A stretch of DNA of 64,000 bases from Octopus sinensis. Its lineage: Eukaryota. The translations under genes were made by a program, and so were the position numbers. The notes below the pieces were generated by a model. It saw only the letters and a list, made by a program, of their open reading frames with translations. It searched no databases and was not told the DNA's origin. Of the stretch, positions 2,791-46,767 are shown in pieces. The DNA is taken from positions 10,788,001 to 10,852,000 of the forward strand of contig NC_043007.1 of NCBI RefSeq assembly GCF_006345805.1. Direction: 5' to 3'. Every line of letters starts with the position of its first letter. Position 1 is the first letter of the stretch.

Positions 2791-3049
2791 ATTGCGTCAC
2801 AAATTATTAAAGGCATAACATTTTAAAAAATCTTATTTAAAAACTACTCGTTGGAATTCAACGAAATTTTAACAGAATCATGGCAGAACTTATTCTTTGT
2901 AAACCTTAGTATTTAATCTATCGGTCTCTTTTGGTAAACTTCCAAGTAATAGGGACGTAAACACACTAACATCGATTATCAAGCGATGGTGGCCGTGGTG
3001 GTTGTGGTAGTGGGACAAGCACAGACACATGCGCACGCATATATATAAA

Positions 3050-3230
3050 CTCTTTTACTTGCTTCAGTCATTTGACTGCGGCCATGATGGAGCACCACCT
3101 TTAGTCGAGCAAATCGACCCCAAGACTTATTCTTTGTAAGCCTAGTACTTGCCGAACCGCTAAGTTATGGGGACGTAAACACACCAAGCGATGTTGGGGG
3201 GGGACAACACAGACACAGAAATAGTTACAC

Positions 3231-3320
<90 letters not shown>

Positions 3321-3486
3321 TACGACGGGTTTCTTTCACTTTCTGTCTACCAAATCCATTCACAAGGCTTTGGTCGGCCCGAGGCTATAGTAGAAGCCAC
3401 TTGTCCAAAGTGCCACACAGTGGGACTGAACCCGGAACCATGTGGTTGGGAAGCAAGCTACTTACCACACAGCCACTTCTACGCCT
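3050..3486 (-). mobile_element. SINE family A (tRNA head, internal microsatellite, CR1-like tail)
   Basis: Matches full-length copy 45159-45586; internal (TA)n at about 3240-3320. Confidence 0.85.
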
Positions 3487-7242: not shown

Positions 7243-7630
7243 TTTTGCTTGTTTCAGTCGTTTGACTGCGGCCATGCTGGAGCACCGCCTTCAGTCGATC
7301 GAGAAAGTCGACCCCAGGACTTATTCTTTGTAAGCCTAGTACTTATTCTATCGGTCTCTTTTGCCGAAACGCCAGGTTACGGGGACGTAAACGCACCAGC
7401 ATCGGTTGTCAAGTGATGTTGGGGGGCGGGACAAACACACACACACACACATACATATATATGTACATATATACGACGGGCTTCTTTCAGTTTCCGTCTA
7501 CCAAATCCACTCACAAGGTTTTGGTCGGCCTGAGGCTATAGTAGAAGACACTTGCCCAAGGTGCCACGCAGTGGGACTGAACCCGGAACCATGTGGTTAG
7601 TAAGCAAGCTACTTACCACACAGCCACTCC
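7240..7630 (-). mobile_element. SINE family A
   Basis: Matches 45159-45586 in reverse complement. Confidence 0.88.
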
Positions 7631-7717: not shown

Positions 7718-7960
7718 GCTAGCAAATAAATCATATTACTCTACCACTAGTATTTGAGTACTCTTTTTTCCACCTTGTTTTCCATTTATGTGTTTACTCC
7801 GGTATATATAAGTATATATATATTAAATGTGTGAAATTGTTATGATCCTTTAAACGCTAACTGATGAAGGAAGATTTAGCGACATTCTCTGCGTGTATTT
7901 TCCGTATAATTTTTCAACACACCCACATATAGTGTTGTGTCTCGAATGAGTAGTTATACC

Positions 7961-8557
7961 TGTTTCTTTATTACCCACAAGGGGCTAAACATAGAGGGGA
8001 CAAACAAGGACAGACATAGGTATTAAGTCGATTACATCGACCCCAGTGCGTAACTGGTACTTAATTTATCGACCCCAAAAGGATGAAAGGCAAAATCGAC
8101 CTCGGCAGAATTTGAACCCAGAACGTAGCGGCAGACGAAATACCTATTTCTTTATTACCCACAAGGGGCTAAACATAGAGGGGACAAACAAGGACAGACA
8201 TAGGTATTAAGTCGATTACATCGACTCCAGTGCGTAACTGGTACTTAATTTATCGACCCCAAAAGGATGAAAGGCAAAATCGACCTCGGCAGAATTTGAA
8301 CCCAGAACGTAGCGGCAGACGAAATACCTATTTCTTTATTACCCACAAGGGGCTAAACATAGAGGGGACAAACAAGGACAGACATAGGTATTAAGTCGAT
8401 TACATCGACTCCAGTGCGTAACTGGTACTTAATTTATCGACCCCGAAAGGATGAAAGGCAAAGTCGACCTCGGCGGAATTTGAATTGAGAACGTATAACG
8501 GCAGCCGAAATACGGCTACGCATTTCGCCCGGCGCGCTAACGTTTCTGCCAGCTCGC
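7961..8557 (-). mobile_element. SINE family C trimer (3 x 184-bp body, one head), 15-bp TSD
   Basis: TTTCTTTATTACC recurs at 7963, 8147 and 8331; TSD ATGAGTAGTTATACC at 7946-7960 and 8558-8572; central GTCGACTTTGCCTTTCATCC...GGTCGATAAA block recalls the MetaSINE domain (from memory). Confidence 0.9.
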
Positions 8558-16886: not shown

Positions 16887-16902
16887 ATGGAAATTCTTAA
16901 AG
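16887..16902 (+). CDS. Pim: Pim-family kinase, coding exon 1 (MEILK-G)
   Basis: Strong Kozak context aagATGG; donor G|GTGAGT at 16903; phase 1 matches exon 2. Confidence 0.8.
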
Positions 16903-17419
16903 GTGAGTTCTCTTTCATTTATTACTTAATAATTAAAATGTTAAATGGGCTTAATTGGATTTTTGGAGCTAGATGTTTGAAAAACACAACCACGCGGCTT
17001 AAATTTCAACCATCGTTTTATTTTTCCTTGTCTCTGTTAACATAACCATAAATAAGTAAAAAGTCAGTTATAATCCGACTTCACTTAAATACTGTTTATC
17101 TTCACTAGAGAAATAGTTCTAATACTTTAGTCTTACGAAAGCCCCTTTACTACACATATAGGGCGATAAGCCATTTTGTTTATGTTTTTGAAAATGTAGT
17201 GTGGGGAAATTTGTAATTGTAAGGTTTAAATTATAGTAATTAAAGATTTCATTTTCAAGTTTAATAATTTAGTAATTGTGTGTTAATATCGTGTAAAAAA
17301 AAAAAAAAATTGTCTTGAGACTTTGTTATTGTAAGTTTAACTAATTGTTAGTTTGTGTTCATAGAAAAATTCAAATGTTGTTTTGCTTTACCATTATGTA
17401 CATTACACGTGTGTATGTG

Positions 17420-17466
<47 letters not shown>

Positions 17467-19359
17467 CACCCACGTGCGTATATTCAATATATAGGTCTTA
17501 GTGTATATTCAGCTTCTGGGCTGATAAAACGCGTGACTTAAAGGGCAGCGATTACTGAGTTTGACATAAACAAACCGTTTTGTTTAAATACGAATGTATA
17601 TATACATATATGTGTGTGTGTGTGTGTGTGGTTATATCTTTATGTATACACACGGACGTTTCTTGTTTAATCTTCAAATGTGTGTGTGTGTGCGCGTGTT
17701 TTGTGATATCTGGTTCTTAAAATCTTGAATAGTAAGATACTGTTTTACAACTATTATTAATATTACACATATTACACTCCCGCAATGCTCTCTCTCTCCA
17801 CCACCACCACTGTCGTCGCAGTCTTCATATCCCTCCCGCCCTTCCCACCGTATATATACTGTCTGACTTCATCTTTTAAGTAGGGTTGTGTATGTATGTA
17901 TGTGTGTGGGCTGATGATGGCTTGCGTGTGTGCTTATTTTATTATTATGTTGGGTGTTGAGACATTTTTAAAACTTGGTCTGTGTGTTCGTGTGTTCGCC
18001 CAGACTTGAAAGCAGCAGTACCATCATCATCGTCGCTGTTGCCCTGACCTCGCTAGCGATGTTCCAGGTCAAGTTAAGCTGATTGTGTGTGTGTGTATAT
18101 ACGTCTGTGTCTGTGTGTCTGTCTTGGCAGCTGACTGACTGCTTGATTACTAGTGGTGGTGGTGGCGACGGAGTGGATGCGCCATTGCACTAAAGTGGTC
18201 TGTCTAGTGTGTGTGTGCGCTTGTGTGTAAGTGTTTTACAGTCAGCCTATATATATATGTATATATATGTATGTATGTACATTGCCAGTGCACTTTGGTA
18301 TGTTGTGTGTGTGTGTGTGTGTGTGTTTTCTGTCTGGAGATTACCAGGCTGTGTATGTTAGCAGGCGGGAAGCTTTTTAGAGAGGTGAGAAGAGGGTTGT
18401 AGTAGCCGAACCAGACATGAAATGGGAGGTCGGCAATTTGATACAACAATGTTATTCAGTGTGTGTCTGTTCTTATCTTAGTCAAGTGCGACGGTCTTTT
18501 TAGATTTTTCGGCCCGACTCCAGGCAATCCTTTTAAATAAAACCCAATATTGGAATAAACCATTTTTCATTTTTTTAAACGGGTTCTTTATTGGCGTCTT
18601 GGAATAATTTTTGCGTAATAATTTAAATGTTATGTGGGATTTTTTTTTTCAAAAAATTTCTAAGTATTCCATATTTAAGAAAATAATTTGGTCTAATGCC
18701 AGATTTGTGATATCGGGTTTTTAAAAAAAAAATTTTTATGTAATATCATTTAGGTCTTGCGCATAATTTCTGTAGTCTGAATTTTAACCTCTACGAGTGT
18801 ATATAGTTAAAAATACGTATTTAATTTACAACTGATAATAATTTTTAGCTGCGTTATGTAGGGGGTCTGCGAATAAGTCCTATATAAACGAAAACGCTTG
18901 TCCGAAAAGGGACTATTGTTTTATTTCTGGAACAAGAAACCGAATTTAGTGTTGCTAGATCTATTCTGTATTTGCTTTGCGATGCCTAGAGATTTAGTTT
19001 TTTTTTCATTAATAGCCTTTGTTTTATTTTCCCTAAAAACAAAAACAAAAGTTTAAGCTAGCTGCCGAAGTGAATTGGAACACGTAGTAGTTTGATCAGA
19101 TATAGTAAAACTCGACAAGCGTCAATGGTCTGTGGTGCGCGCGCTTTTTCCGTGTCTGTGTGTTCGCACCTGTCACACTCGTTCATGCTCACCTGCATTT
19201 TTCAGTCTTCCTCTCTTCGGTATTTCACTTTTTTCTTTTCTTTTTTTTTTTTTTTTCTCTTGCTAGTGCTTTCCTTTTTAATTTCTCTTGTTCGCCATCT
19301 ATCCACTTGTATTTATATTTTCGTTTTTTTTTTTTTCTTTCTCTCTCTCTCTCTCTCAG

Positions 19360-19466
19360 GTCGAGGTAAAACAAGTTTTCAAGACCAATACCATATCCAC
19401 CATCTTCTGGGCAAAGGTGGTTTTGGAATAGTTTACAGTGGATCGCGGAAAAGTGATAATCGACCG
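19360..19466 (+). CDS. Pim: Pim-family kinase, coding exon 2 (P-loop LGKGGFG)
   Basis: Polypyrimidine tract and CAG acceptor; GRGKTSFQDQYHIHHLLGKGGFGIVYSGSRKSDNRP; donor GTATGT; 107 nt. Confidence 0.95.
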
Positions 19467-19910
19467 GTATGTATTTTTAAAAAATACTTTTTGTACGTTT
19501 TACAAGTTAGGATGTGTAGTGAAAAATTATATATGTATATATATATGGGGCTGAAGAGGAAAACCAGAAAATTAACTGTTTTATTATATAAGCTTTTTAA
19601 CCGAAGGGAATTTACGTTCGATTCTTAGATCCGAGAATAATATTTAAGGGGTTTCTGTCTCCCGCTCCCTTCTAAGATTTGTAGTTCTATAGTTTACTCT
19701 CCGTAGACATCTGGTTTACTATTTGTTTTATGGAGTTTGGGTAGGTTATTAGTAAATTTAGAATGCCATCTTCCCAGCCCGAGTTAATTTTTATGGGATG
19801 CGTCTTGTAAATTATATTGTGGGGGTTTTTAAAGAAAAAAATATTTGAATCTGTAGTTCGTGTTAATTATGTGATGTTGATATTTTTTATTTTTGTTATT
19901 TTTACAATAG

Positions 19911-20322
19911 GTTGCTATAAAGGTAATTCAAAGAAGAAAGGTGATCGACTGGGCTCAACTAAATGGTGTTCCCGTAACGCTGGAGATTGTTCTGTTAAAG
20001 AAAGTTGCTGGCATTCCAGGCGTTGTTCGCATGCTGGATTGGTTCCTTACAAACAACTGTTTTATCATTGTCATGGAACGTCCGGACCCAGTTATGGATC
20101 TCTTCGACTACATCACTTCTAAAGGACCATTGAGCGAGGATGTTAGCCGTCGTTTTTTCACTCAAATCGTACATACTGTGATGAACATTCATGAGTCTGG
20201 TGTTGTGCATCGCGACATCAAAGACGAAAACATTTTGGTCGATTTGAAGACTGGCATGCTTAAACTTATCGATTTCGGATCTGGTGCTCTCCTTAAGGAT
20301 TCTGTCTACATGGACTTTGATG
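19911..20322 (+). CDS. Pim: Pim-family kinase, coding exon 3 (VAIK, ERPDP hinge, HRDIKDEN, DFG)
   Basis: TAG acceptor, GTAAGC donor; Pim-diagnostic ERP hinge, HRDIKDENIL and LIDFGSGALLKDSVYMDFDG. Confidence 0.98.
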
Positions 20323-21002
20323 GTAAGCATCAGTTTATTGTTGCTGGAATGTGTGGTTAGCCTCAGATTGCTTCTGTACTAGTAACACTTGCGAGCAAAG
20401 GTTCCTTCCTATCTTTGCTTATTAGGACAACGGGATACCTTGCTATTTCGAAAGTCGAGTGGTTGAAGACCTGTTTCTTCGAGATGACCAATTTATAGTA
20501 GCATATATGGACAGTCAGGAGCTGTAACCATCCTATATAGTGCTTGAGATTGCTATTAATCAGTCCACCTGATTGACATTACTGCGCACTCACGGATTCG
20601 TTTGGAGGAGTGAGATGTGTGAGCAATCTAGGCCTCATTTCTTTTCCTTCGACATTCTAGGTCTTGGCGCACTAAAAATTCACTGCTGGTGTATAATGCT
20701 ACGCTACTGTTTCATGTTTTGGAATCAGTACTTCGGTTTACGGAGTTCAAATTTCACTGGTTCGATTTTTTTTTTTTTTTTAAATATTAGACCATTCTTA
20801 AACTCATTTTTAACTAACATCAGTTCATCAGAATAGTCGCTATCTAGTTTTAATTTCTATAGTAACAAAAACATCCTTCAACTTAACACTACTTATAAAT
20901 AGGAATTCTGTGTGAGAAAGGATGAATGTCTTAAAACAAAAGCCAGACTCTATAAATATCTGACGATTCTAATGTTTTCCATGGTTATTTTTATCTTCAC
21001 AG

Positions 21003-21179
21003 GTACCCGCGTGTACAGTCCACCAGAATGGATTCAGAGCCATAGCTACTACGGACGCACTGCCACCGTCTGGTCTCTTGGTATCTTACTATTTGACATG
21101 GTATGTGGCGATATTCCATTTGAACGTGATGACCAAATCGTTAAAGCTGAACTCCAATTCAAAGATAACTTATCCAAAG
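21003..21179 (+). CDS. Pim: Pim-family kinase, coding exon 4 ([10 protein letters not shown])
   Basis: CAG acceptor, GTAAGG donor; 177 nt; [20 protein letters not shown]. Confidence 0.98.
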
Positions 21180-21536
21180 GTAAGGACACATTTCAAACTA
21201 TATTTAAATGATACGTTTGTAAGTGCATCTAAAATTCGTAAAATCTAGATTTCGTTCAGGAATGACCATAACCTCACATTTTTTTCTTTCAATTCGGCTT
21301 ATTTTAGAAGCTAAAATTTAAGATTTGTTTTTCATAAAATTATTCTTTAATCCGTGTAATCTAAGTCGATCTTGGCAAACTATATCGAGTTGTGTAATTT
21401 TACATATCCTTACAATATCAAGTATGATTCTCAAAGTTAGAATTCTCAATATCGTTAACACTTGTAGGATGTATCAATATTTTTTTTTACCTATGATGGC
21501 AACTAATGTTTTTTTATTCTTTTTTTTTCTTTCCAG

Positions 21537-21724
21537 ATGTTAAAGATTTGATTCGCAAATGTCTGTCTGTCCGTCCATCTGATAGACCCAGCCTGAAAGA
21601 TATACTAAATCACAAATGGATGAAAGATATCTCCGCACCAATTGATTTTAAACAGATTAATCTTGATCATCCCCCATCAATAGCCGGTGCAGCTAGCTGT
21701 ATGGCAGAGGCCCGGAATATATGA
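21537..21724 (+). CDS. Pim: Pim-family kinase, terminal coding exon
   Basis: CAG acceptor; DVKDLIRKCLSVRPSDRPSLKDILNHKWM...ARNI*; total CDS 16+107+412+177+188 = 900 nt (299 aa plus stop). Confidence 0.95.
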
Positions 21725-23990
21725 ATGATTCCAAATTGCATTAGGATTTTTTTTAAAAAGAAGAAAACATGAACTTTTTAATTATTTAAAAGAAAAAAAA
21801 TCAAAGCCACGTCTGAGTGTGCAGTGGTGTCGTTCATTCTGTTCAAAATGAGTTCATTGTGTACATAAATATGAGCTAGCCAGAGGAATAGCTCCCAGTT
21901 TGGGTTAGCCCTGACCTCAAACAATGCAGCAACATGGGCAGTGATGATAATCGTAATCCAAGCCACAGATTTGCTTGCCAAAAGTGAAACATACTGGCCC
22001 TTGGAGATGGGGCTCTCCAAGGCCATCAGTGAAAGAAATTATGAAACCCATTTGGTTGAATCCAACCAGAACTTTTTTTTTTTTTTTTTTTTTTTTTTAA
22101 GAAACGTATTTAAGACTAAAGCAAAGCTTTTTTTTTTTTTTATCCATAATTTAAAATGGGTTGGTTTCTTTTAGTTTATTAGTTGAAGGGACCTTGTACA
22201 GTTTATATAGACTGTCAAAACAGCCTATGTAAAAAAAATCCTCTCCGTCCGAGAGGTGGATTTTTTTTTTTTTTTTTTTTTTTTGCAACATTACAATGCA
22301 TAATTTTCATTAAAAGATGGACGTGCTCTTCGTGTGTGAGCGCCCTGTTAAGTCAAGTGGTGCTAACTGCATCATGGATATGCAGCCAATCAATGCAAGT
22401 TTACTTTGAAGCCATTTTTTTTTTTCTTTTTTCCCCCCTCCCAATGGCGCTTCTATCATTACATTTGTATGTATGTGAATATTTATCCTCCATGTGTGTA
22501 TGTATACACACACACTCACTCACACATACATACACCAGCCGAAAATTCATTCTCTGCATAACCTTAGATTTCATTTTCAAAGTAACCCCCCCTCCTATTC
22601 ATCATTATCATTATAAATGTTCACATTTTTGTCGGCAGGTGTAGTTATTAACGTTTCGAGTCTTGTTTGTTTTTGTTTTTTAAGTATAAGAGGGTGGGGG
22701 TTATTTGATGAAAAATGTTTAGTTTTATAAATAAAAATATTTTTGAAAAACTTTTCTAATTTATATTGAAGTATAAAAAAAAATATATATATATATATAA
22801 GCAACTTCCCTCTTCATCACCTCTTAGCCACTTCTATTTGGGACCTTAAAATATGGCATGTGGAACTAAAACAATCACTGGGTACACGACTTTAAAATTG
22901 TAGATTAAATTCTATCAACAGATTTTATGAAAGAAATCTCATTCAAATCATCCCTCTCTCATCCTTCACCGTTATCTAGTCTAAATTTTGAGAACAATGG
23001 ATAATATATACAAATACATCAAAAGACACATTTAATAGACTGCTATGATATATGCGTTTGTGTGTGTGTATAATTATATTTAATATATATAGTTATTCAC
23101 AGCCCAGTTAGTCTGCTGGGTCAACAAGCGTAAGAGGGCCAAGATGTCTGTCTGCTTTTGGCTGTATAGGCACCAAAAGATTATAAGGAAGGCATATTAC
23201 AGTTACTAGGTTTAAACCTTAGTGATAGCTTTATATATCATATCTGTGCACACACGTTTTCCTCATTTCATGCAAAAACAAAATTTTTTATCCTTTACAA
23301 ATATACATACATATTTCTTTACACAGACACGACAAATTATTGCGGCAAGGCATCGTTACTTCATAGAGTATTCCATTATCATTGCTGCAATGATTTTGTT
23401 CCATAATTCCTCTTTGTCAAAATTTCCATTGTATAAAATCGTTTTTATTTCTCAGTCATTTTGTGAGCCCCCTTCATCCCCCCCCCCTCGCCACATTCCT
23501 ACATACTCTAAGGTAGCTTACCTATCATGAGAGAATTTACCAATCCAGCATCTTTCTGGCCACCAATCAACCCTGGTTGGTTGTGACGGTGGTAGTAAGT
23601 GTTGGTGTTCATCATAGTAGTTGGTCACTTTTAATTAGCCCTTCCCTTAACCTGCATCATTAGGTTAGTCCCTTAATCCTTCTGTCTCCAGAATATAAAA
23701 TTCAACTGGGTAAATGCTAGGGTGGGATGGGGGCCACCACTGCAACAAACAAACAAACAAATGTATATCTAAGAGGTCCTGGGAGCAAGGTCTCCTTTGG
23801 ATGTTGGTGATGAATCTCTTGGAGTTTTTAAGTTATCCACTAATTTGCATTGTAAATATGTTCAGATTCACATTAAATGCGAGTGAGTGTATATATTGAG
23901 TGATTGGTTTATCATACCAAAATAGGTGTGTGGAAGTGTGAGTGCATAAAAAATTGTATTTTTATTAATAAAATTAAAAATTCTGAATTT
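21725..23990 (+). other. Putative Pim 3'UTR with two candidate poly(A) signals
   Basis: Unique, TE-free sequence after the stop; AATAAA at 22729-22734 and 23967-23972, the second followed by a U/GU-rich tract. The end point is inferred. Confidence 0.55.
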
Positions 23991-24239
23991 TATTCACGTC
24001 TTCTGTTTTTCATGTTAAAAAGCAATAGCTGGCAAAAAGAAAAAAAAAACATCTTTTTGCCAAAATACCGAATTTGATGACATATCAGATGGGCTTTTTG
24101 TTTATTTTAATCCATAGTTGGACCTGTATTAGCTTCAATGCAGTAAAGCATAACATTATCTGCGGAAACTAGGTGCATTTAATGTGCCATCAAATGCGGT
24201 ATATAATCTTATATCTTTCACCCATATTGAATTTATGGA

Positions 24240-25054: not shown

Positions 25055-25233
25055 CTATATATATATATATATATATATATGACGGGTTTCATTCTGCCAA
25101 ATCCACTCACAAGGCTTTGGTCGGCCCGAGGCTGTAGTAGAAGACACTTGCCCAAGGTACCACGCAGTAGGACTGAACCCGGAACCATGTGGTTGGTAAG
25201 CAAGCTACTTACCACACAGCCACTCCTGCGCCT
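24764..25233 (-). mobile_element. SINE family A, full length, internal (TA)n
   Basis: Complete head (AGGCGCAGGAGTGGC) through tail. Confidence 0.9.
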
Positions 25234-25698
25234 GGAAAATATACATCCATGGCTTCTGGTTAAAACATTCTCTGAATGGAATTTCCATAGAAATGTGTAC
25301 ATTTTTGGCAAGAAAAATGGCTGTAGCTTTCTAAACGAGGTTCTTTTGCAAGATTATTTCTTCTTACTTATTTCAGTCAGGTTGGGGTATTGCCAGTCAA
25401 ATGAATCTTTAAAAGCCTGGTACTAACTTAGCCAGTTTCTTTGGCCGAAATGCTAACTTACCATGATGTAAACACCAACACCGGTTATCAAGCTGTGGTG
25501 GAGTAAACAAACACACATACATGTGTGTGTCCACTGAGCTTTCAGTTTCCATCTACCAAATCCACAGGCCTTTGGTCGGCTGGAGGCTATAAGTAGAAGA
25601 CACCTGCCCAAGGTTCCATGCAGTGGGACCGATTCGGAACCATGTGGTTGGGAAGCAAATTTTTTACCACACATCCACGTCTGCGCCTAGGTCCTTAC

Positions 25699-26087
25699 AT
25701 ACCTATTTCTTTATTACCCACAAGGAGCTAAACACAGAGGGGACAGACATAGGTATTAAGTCGATTACATCGACCCCAGTGCGTAACTGGTACTTAATTT
25801 ATCGACCCCGAAAGGATGAAAGGCAAAGTCGACCTCGGCGGAATTTGAACTCACAACATAACGCAGACGAAATACCTATTTCTTTACTAAACACAGAGGG
25901 GACAAACAAGGACAGACATAGGTATTAAGTCGATTACATCGACCCCAGTGCGTAACTGGTACTTAATTTATCGACCCCGAAAGGATGAAAGGCAAAGTCG
26001 ACCTCGGCGGAATTTGAACTCACAACGTAACGGCAGACGAAATACCGCTAAGCATTTCGCCCGGCGTGCTAACGTTTCTGCCAGCTC
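25699..26087 (-). mobile_element. SINE family C dimer
   Basis: Two bodies joined at GACGAAATACCTATTTC, one head. Confidence 0.88.
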
Positions 26088-26334: not shown

Positions 26335-26657
26335 CTGACTGCGGTCATGTTGGAGCATCGCTTTTAGTCGAGCAAATCGACCCTAGTACTTATTCTAACG
26401 GTCTCTTGCTGAACTGCTAAGTTACGGGGACGTAAACACACCACCATCGGTTGTCAAGCGATGTTGGGGGGACAAACACACACACATATATATATATACG
26501 ACGGGCTTCTTTCAGTTTCCGTCTACCAAATCCACGTCACAAGGCTTTGGTCGGCCCGAGGCTATAGTAGAAGATACTTGCCCAAGGTGCCACGCAGTTG
26601 GACTGAACCCGGAACCATGTGGTTGGTAAGCAAGCTACTTACCACACAGCCACTCCT
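26335..26657 (-). mobile_element. SINE family A, internally deleted
   Basis: Similarity to other A copies. Confidence 0.8.
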
Positions 26658-27292: not shown

Positions 27293-27803
27293 CCGCCGAG
27301 GTCGACTTTGCCTTTCATCCTTTCGGGGTCGATAAATTAAGTACCAGTTACGCACTGGGGTCGATGTAATCGACTTAATACCTATGTCCGTCCTTGTTTC
27401 TCCCCTCTGTGTTTAGCCCCTTGTGGGTAATAAAGAAATAGGTATTTCGTCTGCCATTATGTTCTGGGTTCAAATTCCGCCGAGGTCGACTTTGCCTTTC
27501 ATCCTTTCGGGGTCGATAAATTAAGTACCAGTTACGCACTGGGGTCGATGTAATCGTCTTAATACCTATGTATGTCCTTGTTTGCCCCCTCTGTGTTTAG
27601 CCCCTTGTGGGTAATAAAGAAATAGGTATTTCGTCTGCCTTTACGTTCTGAGTTCAAATTCCGCCGAGGTCGACTTTGCCTTTCATCCTTTCGGGGTCGA
27701 TTAAATAAGTACCAGTTACGCACTGGGGTCGATATAATCGACTTAATACCTATGTTTGTCCCCTCTGTGTTTAGCCCCTTGTGGGTAATAAAGAAATAGG
27801 TAT
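27293..27803 (+). mobile_element. SINE family C trimer, 5'-truncated
   Basis: CCGCCGAGG at 27293, 27477 and 27661 (184-bp period); AGGTATAG on both flanks. Confidence 0.9.
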
Positions 27804-30057: not shown

Positions 30058-30413
30058 CTCTTTACTCTCTTTTACTTGTTTCAGTCATTTGACTGCGGCC
30101 ATCCTGGAGCACCGCCTTTAGTCGAGGAAATCGACCACCAGGACTTATTCTTTGGAAGCCTAGCACTTATTCTATCGGATTCCTTTGCCGAACCGCTAAG
30201 TTACCAGCATCGGTTGTCAAGCGATGTTGGTGGGGGGGGGGGACAAACACAGACACACAAACACAAACATACATATATATACATATATACGATGGGCTTC
30301 TTTCAGTTTCCGTCTACCAAATCCACTCACAAGGCTTTGGTCGGCCTGAGGCTATAGTAGAAAACACATGCCCAAGGTGCCACGCAGTGGGACTGAACCC
30401 GTAACCATGTGGT
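30058..30413 (-). mobile_element. SINE family A, 5'-truncated
   Basis: Similarity to other A copies. Confidence 0.85.
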
Positions 30414-34419: not shown

Positions 34420-35265
34420 TTCTTTTATTTGTTTCGGTAATCTTGACTGCGGTCATGCTGGAGCCCCCCCCCCTTTAGTCGAACAAATCGTCCCGAGGAC
34501 TTATTGTTTGTAAGCCTAGTACTTATTCTATCGGATTCTTTTGCCGAATCGCTAAGTTACGGGGACGACAACACATCAACATCGGTTGTCAAGCGATGGT
34601 TGGGGGACAAACACAAACACACAAACACACACAAATACACACACATACACACACATACACACACATACACACACACATATATATATGACGGGCTTGTTTC
34701 AGATTCCCTCTACCAAATCCACTCGCAAGGCTTTGGTTGGTCCGAGAGAGGACACTTGCCCAAGGTGCCACGCAGTGGGACTGAACCAGGAACCATGTTG
34801 TTGGTAAGCAAGCTACTTACCACACATCCACTCATGTACATATATATACATATATTCTTTTCTACTCTATGCACAAAACCCGAAATTTTGTGGGGGGAGG
34901 AGGCCAGTCGATTAGATCGACTCTAGTACGCAACTGGTATTTAATTTATCGACCCCGAAAGGATGAAAGGCAAACTCGACCTCGGTGGAATTTGAACTCA
35001 GAACGTAAAGACAGACAAAATACCGCTAAACATTTTGTCCGGCGTGCTAACGTTTCTTATTTCTTTACTGTCCCCTAGGGGCTACACACAGAGGGGACAA
35101 ACAAGGACAGACAAACGAATAAGTCGATTATATCGACCCCTGTGCATAACTGGTGCTTATTCAATCAACCCCGAAAGAATCAAAGGCAGTCGACCTCGGC
35201 GGAATTTGAACTTAGAACGTAACGGCATTTCGTCCGGTGCGTTAACGTTTCTGCCAGCTCGCCGC
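34420..35265 (-). mobile_element. SINE cluster: family A followed by a family C heterodimer
   Basis: A at about 34420-34830; C units at about 34880-35265 joined at AACGTTTC|TTATTTC. Confidence 0.8.
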
Positions 35266-36850: not shown

Positions 36851-36950
36851 NNNNNNNNNNNNNNNNNNNNNNNNNNNNNNNNNNNNNNNNNNNNNNNNNN
36901 NNNNNNNNNNNNNNNNNNNNNNNNNNNNNNNNNNNNNNNNNNNNNNNNNN
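36851..36950. other. Assembly gap (100 N)
   Basis: Run of N, interrupting a SINE A and (CA)n region. Confidence 1.
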
Positions 36951-38099: not shown

Positions 38100-38327
38100 C
38101 TCTTATTTCTTTATTGCCCACAAGGGGCTAAACATAGAAGAGACAAACAAGGACAGACAAACGGATTAAGTCGATTATATCGGCCTCAGTGCGTAAACGG
38201 TACTTTATTTATCGACCCCGAAAGGATGAAAGGCAAAGTTGACCTCGGCGGAATTTGAACTCAGAACGTAGCGGCAGACGAAAAGCATTTCGCCCGACGT
38301 TCTAACGTTTCTGCCAGCTGGCCGCCT
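38100..38327 (-). mobile_element. SINE family C monomer, 10-bp TSD
   Basis: TSD TATCCAGGTA at 38090-38099 and 38328-38337. Confidence 0.9.
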
Positions 38328-41274: not shown

Positions 41275-41694
41275 TACTCTTTTTACACTTTTACTTGTTT
41301 CAGTCATTTGACTGCGGCCATGCTGGAGCACCGCTTTTAGTCGAGCAAATCGACCCCGGGACTTATTCTTTGTAAGCCCAGTACTTATTCTATCAGACTC
41401 TTTTGTCGAACCGCTAAGTGACGGGGGACGTAAACACACCAGCATCGGTTGTCAAGCAATGCTAGGGGGACAAACACAGACACGCAAACGTATACACACA
41501 CACTTATATATATATATATATACATATATACGACAGGCTTCTTTCAGTTTCCGTCTACCAAATCCACTCACAAGGCATTGGTCGGTCCGGGGCTATAGCA
41601 GGAGACACTTGCCCAAGATGCCACGCAGTGGGACTGAACCCAAAACCATGTAGTTGGTTAGCAAGCTACTTACCAGACAGCCACTCCTGCGCCT
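41275..41694 (-). mobile_element. SINE family A, full length
   Basis: Complete head to (TCTTTTAC)n tail. Confidence 0.9.
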
Positions 41695-45158: not shown

Positions 45159-45586
45159 TAGGCGCAGGAGTGGCTATGTGGTAAGTAGCTTGCTTACCAA
45201 CCACATGGTCCCGGGTTCAGTCCCACTGCATGGCACCTTGGGCATGTGTCTTCTACTATAGCCTCGGGCCGACCAAAGCCTTGTGAGTGGATTTTGTAGA
45301 CGAAAACTGAAAGAAGCCCGTCGTATATATGTATATATATACGTGTGTATGTGTGTGTATATGTCTGTGTGTCTGTGTTTGTCCCCCCGACCAACATCGC
45401 TTGACAACCGATGCTGGTGTGTTTACGTCCCCGTAACTTAGCGGTTCGGCAAAAGAGACCGATGGAATAAGTACTAGGCTTACAAAGAATAAGTCCTGGG
45501 GTCGATTTTCTCGACTAAAAGGCGGTGCTCCAGCATGGCCGCAGTCAAATGCCTGAAACAAGTAAAAGAGTAAAGAGTAAGAGTAA
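45159..45586 (+). mobile_element. SINE family A, best-preserved copy
   Basis: tRNA-like head (TGGCTATGTGG, GGTTCAGTCC), central domain, microsatellite, tail GGCGGTGCTCCAGCATGGCCGCAG...(AAGAGT)n. Confidence 0.92.
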
Positions 45587-45740: not shown

Positions 45741-46173
45741 TTTCAAATTTTAGTACAAGGCCAGCAATTTCGGGAGAGAGGGTGGATCTATTACGTCGAC
45801 TCCAGTGTTCAACTGATACTTATTTTATCGATAGCGAAAGAATGAAACGGAAAGCCGACCTTGGCGGAATTTGAACTCATAACGTAAAGACTGAGAAAAT
45901 ACCTATTTCTTTATTACCCACAAGGGGCTAAACACAGAGGGGGCAAACAAGGACAGATATAGGTATTAAGTCGATTACATCGACCCCAGTGCGTAACTGG
46001 TACTTAATTTATCGACCCCGAAAGGATGAAAGGCAAAGTCGACCTCGGCGGAATTTGAACTCACAACGTAACGCAGACGAAATACCGCTAAGCACTTCGT
46101 CCGGCGTGCTAACGTTTCTGCCAGCTCGCCGCATTTTGCCCGACGTGTTAACGACCCAGTTAGCTCGCCGCCT
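45741..46173 (-). mobile_element. Full-length young SINE C inserted into the head of an older SINE C
   Basis: Old body to about 45898, young copy about 45899-46130, remainder of old head 46131-46173. Confidence 0.8.
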
Positions 46174-46527: not shown

Positions 46528-46767
46528 AAGAAATACCTATTTCTTTACTAACCACAAGGGGCTAAACACAGAGAGGACAAACAAGGACAGACAAACGGAT
46601 TAAGTCGATTACATCGACCCCAGTGCGTAACTGGTACTTAATTTATCGACCCCGAAAGGATGAAAGGCAAAGCTGACCTCGGCGGAATTTGAACTCAGAA
46701 CGTAACGGCTGACGAAATACGGCTACGCATTTCGCCCGGCGTGCTAACGATTCTGCCAGCTCACCGC
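46528..46767 (-). mobile_element. SINE family C monomer
   Basis: GAAATACCTATTTC tail to CCAGCTCACC head. Confidence 0.88.

Follow-up and report, generated by a model that had tools for sequence, protein, structure and literature searches.

The stretch analyzed here, referred to as the window, comprises 64,000 nucleotides (nt) of Octopus sinensis (NCBI RefSeq assembly GCF_006345805.1, contig NC_043007.1, positions 10,788,001 to 10,852,000 of the forward strand). It contains a Pim kinase gene followed by several seed matches to the microRNA (miRNA) miR-33, which are the subject of this work; gene and sites are all on the plus strand, and positions are those of the window. The Pim coding region (16887..21724), delimited by splice-site reconstruction and translation, consists of exons at 16887-16902 (starting with the ATG), 19360-19466, 19911-20322, 21003-21179, and 21537-21724, with the stop codon TGA at 21722-21724, i.e., NC_043007.1:10809722-10809724, in LOC115217041. 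Its product of 299 amino acids is identical to XP_029642459.1 (P0121), a protein named in its sources pim-1 (O. sinensis) and pim-3-like (O. vulgaris), and shares 55 to 83% identity with animal Pim kinases, from Argonauta to human. The octopus gene is a single pre-duplication Pim ortholog. Along 2676 nt, its 3' flank matches chromosome CM016869.1 of GCA_006345805.1 at 100% identity.

Two candidate ends delimit the untranslated 3' region (3'UTR). The proximal 3'UTR (21725..22770) reaches a conserved block around an AATAAA signal at 22730-22735, with 91% identity to Argonauta over 22708-22770 and a counterpart in O. bimaculoides. A distal extension (22771..23990) reaches a second AATAAA at 23967-23972, and here 23951-23992 forms a weak conserved island matching Argonauta. 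The 3' flanks of O. sinensis and Argonauta hians are alignable in only four short islands; two of them each hold one of the AATAAA signals (at 22730 and at 23967), 3' of the miR-33 sites 1 to 3 described below, and the remaining two are centered on sites 2 and 3. Besides, Data S3 of Zolotarov et al. 2022 (PMC9699675) gives a conserved 8mer of Ovu-Novel-19, CACAGACA, in the 3'UTR of LOC115217041. Its published alignment column 1619-1626 corresponds to 23322-23329 of the window, and thus at least 1.6 kb past the Pim stop are treated as 3'UTR in those data. From the conserved AATAAA signals, the mRNA of a related cephalopod, and this published UTR, we infer that sites 1 to 3 are inside the Pim mRNA. 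The possibility that the UTR ends before them, which the original prediction (made from the sequence alone) had named as its own weak point, finds no support, since the sites are 5' of both conserved poly(A)-signal blocks and the orthologs of sites 2 and 3 are found inside mRNA contigs of the related cephalopod. Directly 3' of the proximal AATAAA, a stretch of 34 nt (ATATTTTTGAAAAACTTTTCTAATTTATATTGAA, 22737-22770, plus strand) shows perfect identity between O. sinensis and Argonauta and was found in O. bimaculoides too. It exceeds the length needed for a poly(A) signal and, as it has an AUUUA, might serve as a cleavage element downstream of that signal or as a regulatory element, AU-rich or of another kind.

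Four sense-strand 7mer-m8 matches to the miR-33 seed (CAATGCA) are found 3' of the Pim stop, one of which (22391-22398) is an 8mer; their positions agree with those originally predicted. Site 1 (21922..21928) is a 7mer-m8 without supplementary pairing; it is young and not conserved. Site 2 (22284..22300), which we call type A, is made up of TGCAAC, an AT bulge, and TACAATGCA, the seed match CAATGCA being at 22294-22300. Here, TACAATGCA pairs with miR-33 nt 2-10 and TGCAAC with nt 11-16 (6 bp), leaving a 2-nt bulge in the target and a duplex free energy of -20.4 kcal/mol, a computation that bears out the pairing proposed beforehand for this site. Site 3, or type B (22380..22398), carries the 8mer CAATGCAA at 22391-22398 after ATGCAGC, which pairs with miR-33 nt 11-17 (7 bp, one of them G:U; free energy, -18.6 kcal/mol). 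Sites 2 and 3 both have the second helix (at least 3-4 bp to the miRNA 3' region, over a short loop) by which 3'-supplementary sites are recognized. Site 4 (24136..24142) is a 7mer-m8 located ~170 nt past the distal AATAAA and probably outside the Pim mRNA. Incidentally, directly 5' of site 2, the stretch 22232-22285 (plus strand) contains a run of eight As, a small GC hairpin (CCTCTC-CGTCC-GAGAGG), and a T run of ~30 nt. The T run, which unlike the hairpin is kept in Argonauta, faces miR-33 nt 17-21, leaving them unpaired.

There is no global enrichment of the heptamer. CAATGCA occurs 8 times on both strands of the whole window, against 12.8 expected; few copies elsewhere had been noticed beforehand. 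In the 1046 nt from the stop to the proximal poly(A) block, in contrast, there are 3 copies versus 0.13 expected from 20,000 dinucleotide shuffles (P=3e-4); extending the region out to the distal AATAAA raises the expectation to 0.28 (P=3e-3). The original estimate of well under 0.1 chance heptamers per 0.7 kb was about right, if slightly optimistic (computed value, ~0.09). Leaving low-complexity heptamers aside, only CAATGCA, ATCATTA, TGTATGT, and AACTTTT have three copies in the proximal UTR. However, the seed was chosen post hoc, and correcting P=3e-4 for the ~138 octopus miRNA families leaves a P of ~0.04 for the window alone, so that the case rests on conservation. As for the ligand, whose presence in the species was to be confirmed, PMC9699675 reports Ovu-Mir-33_5p as sequenced and expressed in O. 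vulgaris tissues, with 4334 reads in the axial nerve cord, and gives its 8mer as CAATGCAA.

Among cephalopods, the four sites behave differently. O. vulgaris keeps all of them, with a G in place of A22293 at site 2 that results in a G:U pair at nt 9. In Argonauta, the UTR of which is ~1 kb longer via insertions, sites 1 and 4 are absent and sites 2 and 3 are kept within islands of 87 and 85% identity. At its site 3, a run of 25 nt (ATATGCAGCCAATCAATGCAAGTTT) is identical. In O. bimaculoides, site 1 reads CAACGCA and site 4 is kept, but a gap of 487 Ns in assembly GCA_001194135.2 (L004, 12123-12609) is located exactly over the orthologs of sites 2 and 3 and of a neighboring miR-29 site; lists of miRNA response elements (MREs) based on two octopus species cannot, therefore, have scored any of the three. 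A third cephalopod, probably a decapodiform (L005-L009), is represented by intron-less mRNA contigs (L005/L006) encoding a Pim 72-73% identical to the octopod proteins. It has two miR-33 8mers, 592 and 663 nt past the stop (570 and 667 in octopus), and no site 1. In L005 these read CTGCAACGTCACAATGCAA (the TGCAAC helix plus the 8mer) and GCCATGTCAATGCAA, with the miR-29 match TGGTGCTA between them. Judged by these alignments, sites 2 and 3 are old, and sites 1 and 4 are not conserved. The claim of three conserved sites is thus upheld for sites 2 and 3 and fails for site 1, mutated in O. bimaculoides and absent from Argonauta and the third cephalopod. Absence from related cephalopods, which had been named as damaging, does not apply to sites 2 and 3, present in both Argonauta and the L005/L006 mRNAs.

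We extended the comparison to the Pim loci of eight further species (Mizuhopecten, Lottia, Liolophura, Lingula, Capitella, Branchiostoma, Lytechinus, and Limulus). Every lophotrochozoan genome has at least one sense-strand CAATGCAA at no more than 700 nt past the Pim stop. In the first kb, the seven lophotrochozoan lineages contain 13 sense and 0 antisense seed matches, over a background of 0-0.17 per kb. The same motif emerged from an unbiased k-mer scan that counted the lineages sharing each k-mer in the first 1 kb past the stop. Only the overlapping octamers TCAATGCA and CAATGCAA, among 65,536, were found in 7/7 lineages, where a first-order Markov null predicts 0.004, and among the 16,384 heptamers only TCAATGC, CAATGCA, and AATGCAA were; poly-T was not in all seven. 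Multiplying the per-lineage probabilities for CAATGCAA gives 1e-10, which becomes 6e-6 when Bonferroni-corrected. The comparison of Pim 3'UTRs across molluscs and other bilaterians, recommended with the original prediction, returned CAATGCAA in all seven lophotrochozoan lineages. As far as sequence comparison can tell, conservation of the miR-33/Pim pairing across Lophotrochozoa (cephalopods, bivalves, limpets, chitons, brachiopods, and annelids) is well supported.

Environmental sequences provided an independent replication. One scan of Joint Genome Institute (JGI) metagenome and metatranscriptome contigs yielded 80 intron-less Pim mRNAs, from which open reading frames and 3'UTRs were extracted; the sequences were clustered at 85% protein identity, and each cluster was assigned to the nearest named relative. 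Considering only clusters with at least 500 nt of UTR, and scoring the 8mer in the first 1 kb, it was found in 7 of the 12 lophotrochozoan-like clusters, compared with 0.34 expected (Poisson-binomial P=6.5e-9). The 23 arthropod-like clusters had none (0.69 expected) and a 7mer in one (1.67 expected). The single echinoderm-like cluster (L049) has the 8mer at position 459, with the TCAATGCAA core (0.06 expected). The UTR of a mammal-like contig, L035, spans just 309 nt. Over the combined 19 lophotrochozoan lineages, no octamer is shared as widely as CAATGCAA (14/19), which ranks ahead of the AU-rich-element-like TATTTATT (11/19). Another octamer, TTAGGAAA, often as CTTTAGGAAAT, is present in the 3'UTR of 8 of the 12 lophotrochozoan-like Pim clusters (loci L018-L097), as widespread there as the miR-33 8mer, and may be specific to one clade, possibly annelids.

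Not only the seed match but also its surroundings recur. Type A sites, TGCAA(C/T) followed after 2-3 nt by NCAATGCA, are found in cephalopods, the scallop (where the architecture reads CTGCAACACAGCAATGCAA), Lingula, and L029. Type B sites, GCCA followed after 2-3 nt by TCAATGCAA, are found in cephalopods including L005, the scallop, Lottia, and the environmental L019 and L025. In lineages having both types, A is 5' of B. The miR-33 21-mer (GUGCAUUGUAGUUGCAUUGCA) is identical in human and mosquito, and the hexamer GCAUUG occurs in it twice, at nt 3-8 and nt 14-19, so that two nearby CAATGC-like motifs in a target can pair with both halves of one miR-33. This is the arrangement in Capitella (L014, relative position 684, GTCAATGCTCGAGTCAATGCAA) and Lingula (L013, relative position 490, GCAATGTCAGTCAATGCAA), where an upstream CAATGC or CAATGT pairs with nt 14-19 or 14-20. 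Overall, a helix with a bp score of at least 6 to miR-33 nt 11-17 or 14-20 accompanies 9 of 23 sites versus 5.5% of random UTR positions, and resampling of the mean score of the upstream flanks gave a P of ~0.001. These flanks and 3'-half helices fit miR-33 as the ligand and are difficult to attribute to a protein or DNA motif.

A companion site for miR-29 was also found. Its 8mer TGGTGCTA is located at 22358..22365 (plus strand), 25 nt 5' of site 3 (start-to-start offset, 33 nt). Such spacing is within the range usually considered cooperative. The match is kept at similar spacing in Argonauta (L001, ~20217) and L005 (~1709). TGGTGCTA is the published 8mer of Ovu-Mir-29-P1_3p, according to PMC9699675. 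Capitella, Liolophura, Lingula, and several lophotrochozoan-like mRNAs from the environment likewise have miR-29 matches (7- or 8-mers) in their Pim UTRs, altogether 13/20 sequences, Argonauta included. In the scallop Mizuhopecten (L010, relative position 471) and the bivalve-like L019 (relative position 753), an 8mer for miR-34, CACTGCCA, abuts the type B site (CACTGCCACTTCAATGCAAA), and the GCCA preceding type B sites in other phyla may be related to this miR-34 match.

Taking these results together, we consider that sites 2 and 3 are functional, selectively maintained miR-33 response elements of the octopus Pim 3'UTR, with a probability of roughly 80%. Argonaute loaded with miR-33 would bind both seed matches, with the second helix to nt 11-17 making them 3'-supplementary sites, and would recruit GW182/CCR4-NOT, thereby shortening the poly(A) tail, destabilizing the Pim mRNA, and lowering its translation. 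The adjacent conserved miR-29 site may add to this repression. Since mammalian Pim kinases show constitutive activity and are regulated chiefly through their abundance, miR-33 would set the Pim dose. If miR-33 is encoded, as we infer, within the octopus SREBP gene, sterol/mTORC1 signaling would be transmitted onto Pim via miR-33, as in mammals.

Other readings of the same sites were considered. Many lineages conserve a T facing nt 9 of the miRNA, though it is unable to pair with U9, three of the sites happen to read ATGCAAAT, and the predicted accessibility of the sites is not high. All this would suit a different ligand, either an RNA-binding protein reading the conserved TCAATGCAA core or a DNA-level, POU/octamer-like (ATGCAAAT) enhancer downstream of Pim. 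We find this highly improbable, because conservation spans exactly the miR-33 8mer, including the A opposite nt 1, the motif is found 13 times in sense and never in antisense and is located within mature mRNA contigs, the flanks complement the 3' half of miR-33 more often than random UTR positions do, and in human PIM1 experiments have shown this 8mer to depend on miR-33. Furthermore, the sequence 3' of the 8mer is variable (AAT, AAA, AGT, AAC, AGG, or ATA), which means that the POU octamer is not conserved as such. This candidate was rejected: its 3' half varies, the octopus sites reading ATGCATAA (site 2) and ATGCAAGT, and the core extends 5' as TCAATGCAA.

The direction of the regulation might also be reversed, with Pim mRNA lowering miR-33 through target-directed miRNA degradation (TDMD) triggered mainly by site 2. 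Its complementarity is unusually extensive (15/21 nt with a small central bulge) and conserved in cephalopods and the scallop. However, in known TDMD triggers the pairing runs through the 3' end of the miRNA, and pairing at site 2 ends at nt 16, with nt 17-21 unpaired opposite the U-run. We rejected this candidate, to which we give a very small probability: the helices of the octopus sites end at nt 16-17, and an ordinary 3'-supplementary architecture fits them. The least credible reading is a chance cluster with no function. It draws on the shortness of seed matches, the post hoc choice among ~138 miRNA families (P of ~0.04 for the window alone), and the behavior of sites 1 and 4, which resembles that of neutral sequence, but it faces a conservation across phyla and an independent replication, with corrected P values between 6e-6 and 6e-9, and is effectively refuted for sites 2 and 3.

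Several points do weigh against sites 2 and 3 being functional miR-33 response elements. The evidence for miR-33 and Pim in invertebrates is comparative only, and the 3' half of the cephalopod miR-33 was taken as equal to the human and mosquito form. No transcript showing the UTR end in O. sinensis was found, the exact protein being matched on two genome assemblies only. The O. bimaculoides gap makes this species uninformative for sites 2 and 3, whose predicted local accessibility is unremarkable (25th-32nd percentile). In Lottia and Liolophura, an AATAAA precedes some of the miR-33 sites, so some isoforms may exclude them. Lastly, 5 of the 12 lophotrochozoan-like environmental clusters miss the site, and the taxonomic labels of all the environmental clusters are guesses by nearest relative, the clusters themselves being perhaps not fully independent.

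Two kinds of repeats were noted in the rest of the window. An interspersed repeat of ~140-185 bp, often in short tandem arrays, is found at 7955-8470, 25696-26019, 27300-27800, 38104-38260, 45904-46060, and 46538-46694, with 70-77% identity to stretches of the Argonauta Pim locus (L001, ~1567-1712, 3046-3192, 20472-20609, and 25061-25221). An element of ~70 nt has seven copies (3320-3389, 7471-7540, 26496-26566, 30287-30356, 34683-34740, 41528-41597, and 45257-45326) that match Argonauta L001 6262-6331 at 81-89% identity. None of them was called as tRNA by ARAGORN, which found no tRNA in the window, and the element may be the conserved core of a short interspersed nuclear element (SINE). A run of 100 Ns (36851-36950) is an assembly gap of the source genome. 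A repeat or transposon origin of the miR-33 sites was rejected, because no other part of the window holds a copy of the UTR, save for a simple-sequence match at 23048-23097. We also rejected a minus-strand miR-33 gene or paralog at site 2, around which no miRNA-like hairpin folds. Scanning the entire window against Rfam at gathering thresholds detected no RNA family, and hence no mir-33 gene is present in it.

How old the pairing is beyond Lophotrochozoa is less clear. According to the original prediction, the regulation either predates the protostome-deuterostome split or arose by convergence; great age within Lophotrochozoa is borne out, but bilaterian ancestry is plausible only, as the arthropod-like mRNAs are without the 8mer. 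One scenario is that the miR-33:Pim interaction goes back to the ancestor of Bilateria, or at least of Nephrozoa, whose Pim 3'UTR would have had miR-33 sites, probably two (type A 5' of an 8mer type B), next to a miR-29 site. Molluscs, brachiopods, annelids, at least some echinoderms, and vertebrate PIM1/PIM3 would have retained these sites for over 500 million years, and arthropods would have lost them. Lophotrochozoan and vertebrate sites would then derive from one ancestral site. We regard this scenario as a serious possibility, at slightly under even odds.

The alternative, that Pim sites for miR-33 arose separately in Lophotrochozoa and vertebrates without any ancestral bilaterian circuit, is tentative as well and, to our judgment, somewhat doubtful. 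A short seed match is easily gained, and damping a growth kinase would be useful to both lineages. Limulus (L017) has no miR-33 site in the 4 kb past the Pim stop, the arthropod-like clusters are at or below chance for both the 8mer (0/23) and the 7mer (1/23), and the invertebrate deuterostome genomes have weak sites only (in Lytechinus a 7mer-A1 at 518, in the amphioxus Branchiostoma a 7mer-A1 and a 7mer-m8, at 773 and 1417, respectively). On the other hand, both vertebrate paralogs, PIM1 and PIM3, have conserved sites, which suggests that the gene had one before its duplication, and the echinoderm-like L049 carries its 8mer at 459 with the same TCAATGCAA core. Within Lophotrochozoa, the shared flanks (TGCAAC-N2-3- and GCCA-N2-3-T) and the fixed order of A before B argue for descent. 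A single loss is another possible reading of the arthropod pattern; the lack of the 8mer in these mRNAs, although insects have miR-33, suggests a lineage-specific one. A pairing older than the protostome-deuterostome split is thus plausible, with ancestry and convergence near even odds.

Whatever the ultimate age of the pairing, lophotrochozoan Pim 3'UTRs share no other octamer as widely as the miR-33 8mer, a clean and unbiased signature. Conserved miRNA-target pairs across phyla are rare, and let-7:lin-41 is still the example of the field. Should the pairing be ancestral, it would be among the very few, beside let-7:lin-41, that can be traced to the base of Bilateria, and it would tie a growth and survival kinase to a miRNA encoded, where examined, in the lipid-sensing SREBP gene. 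The restraint of a growth kinase by miR-33 might then equal or exceed in age its role in cholesterol and lipids, and the apparent loss in arthropods would provide a natural experiment. The vertebrate counterpart is medically relevant, as PIM1 and PIM3 are oncogenes subject to feedback by mTORC1/SREBP/miR-33. Our literature search turned up no study of miR-33 and Pim in an invertebrate. The consulted part of PMC9699675 catalogs Ovu-Mir-33 8mers for other octopus genes, and the Pim sites are not among the MRE entries seen there, most likely because of the O. bimaculoides gap over them. The published octopus MRE catalog would thus miss real conserved sites where the assembly of this species has gaps.

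The closest known system is mammalian miR-33a/b and PIM1/PIM3, and the statement that these genes are miR-33 targets is backed by published validation (PMC5601135, PMC5701013, PMC4546478). Human PIM1 has a vertebrate-conserved miR-33a 8mer at UTR positions 734-741, established by luciferase assay with a seed mutant (PMC5601135). The miR-33 site of PIM3 is conserved in vertebrates/mammals, and miR-33, itself downstream of mTORC1 and SREBP, represses PIM3 (PMC5701013; PMC4546478). The octopus case shares with them the miRNA family, the target family, the 3'UTR 8mer CAATGCAA, its conservation within the clade, and even a similar distance from the stop (667-674 in octopus). Unlike mammals, octopus has a single Pim with two conserved 3'-supplementary sites and a companion miR-29 site, known here from sequence alone. 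The work of Zolotarov et al. 2022 (PMC9699675) uses the same species pair and MRE definition and includes the same gene, LOC115217041, through its Ovu-Novel-19 site, but compares two Octopus species, whereas the conservation described here spans phyla. A more general parallel is let-7:lin-41/TRIM71, in which an ancient miRNA also addresses the 3'UTR of the same target in distant phyla, through two sites and with pairing beyond the seed. That pair is genetically validated in nematodes, flies, and vertebrates, whereas the evidence for miR-33:Pim is comparative, and the pairing is apparently missing from arthropods.

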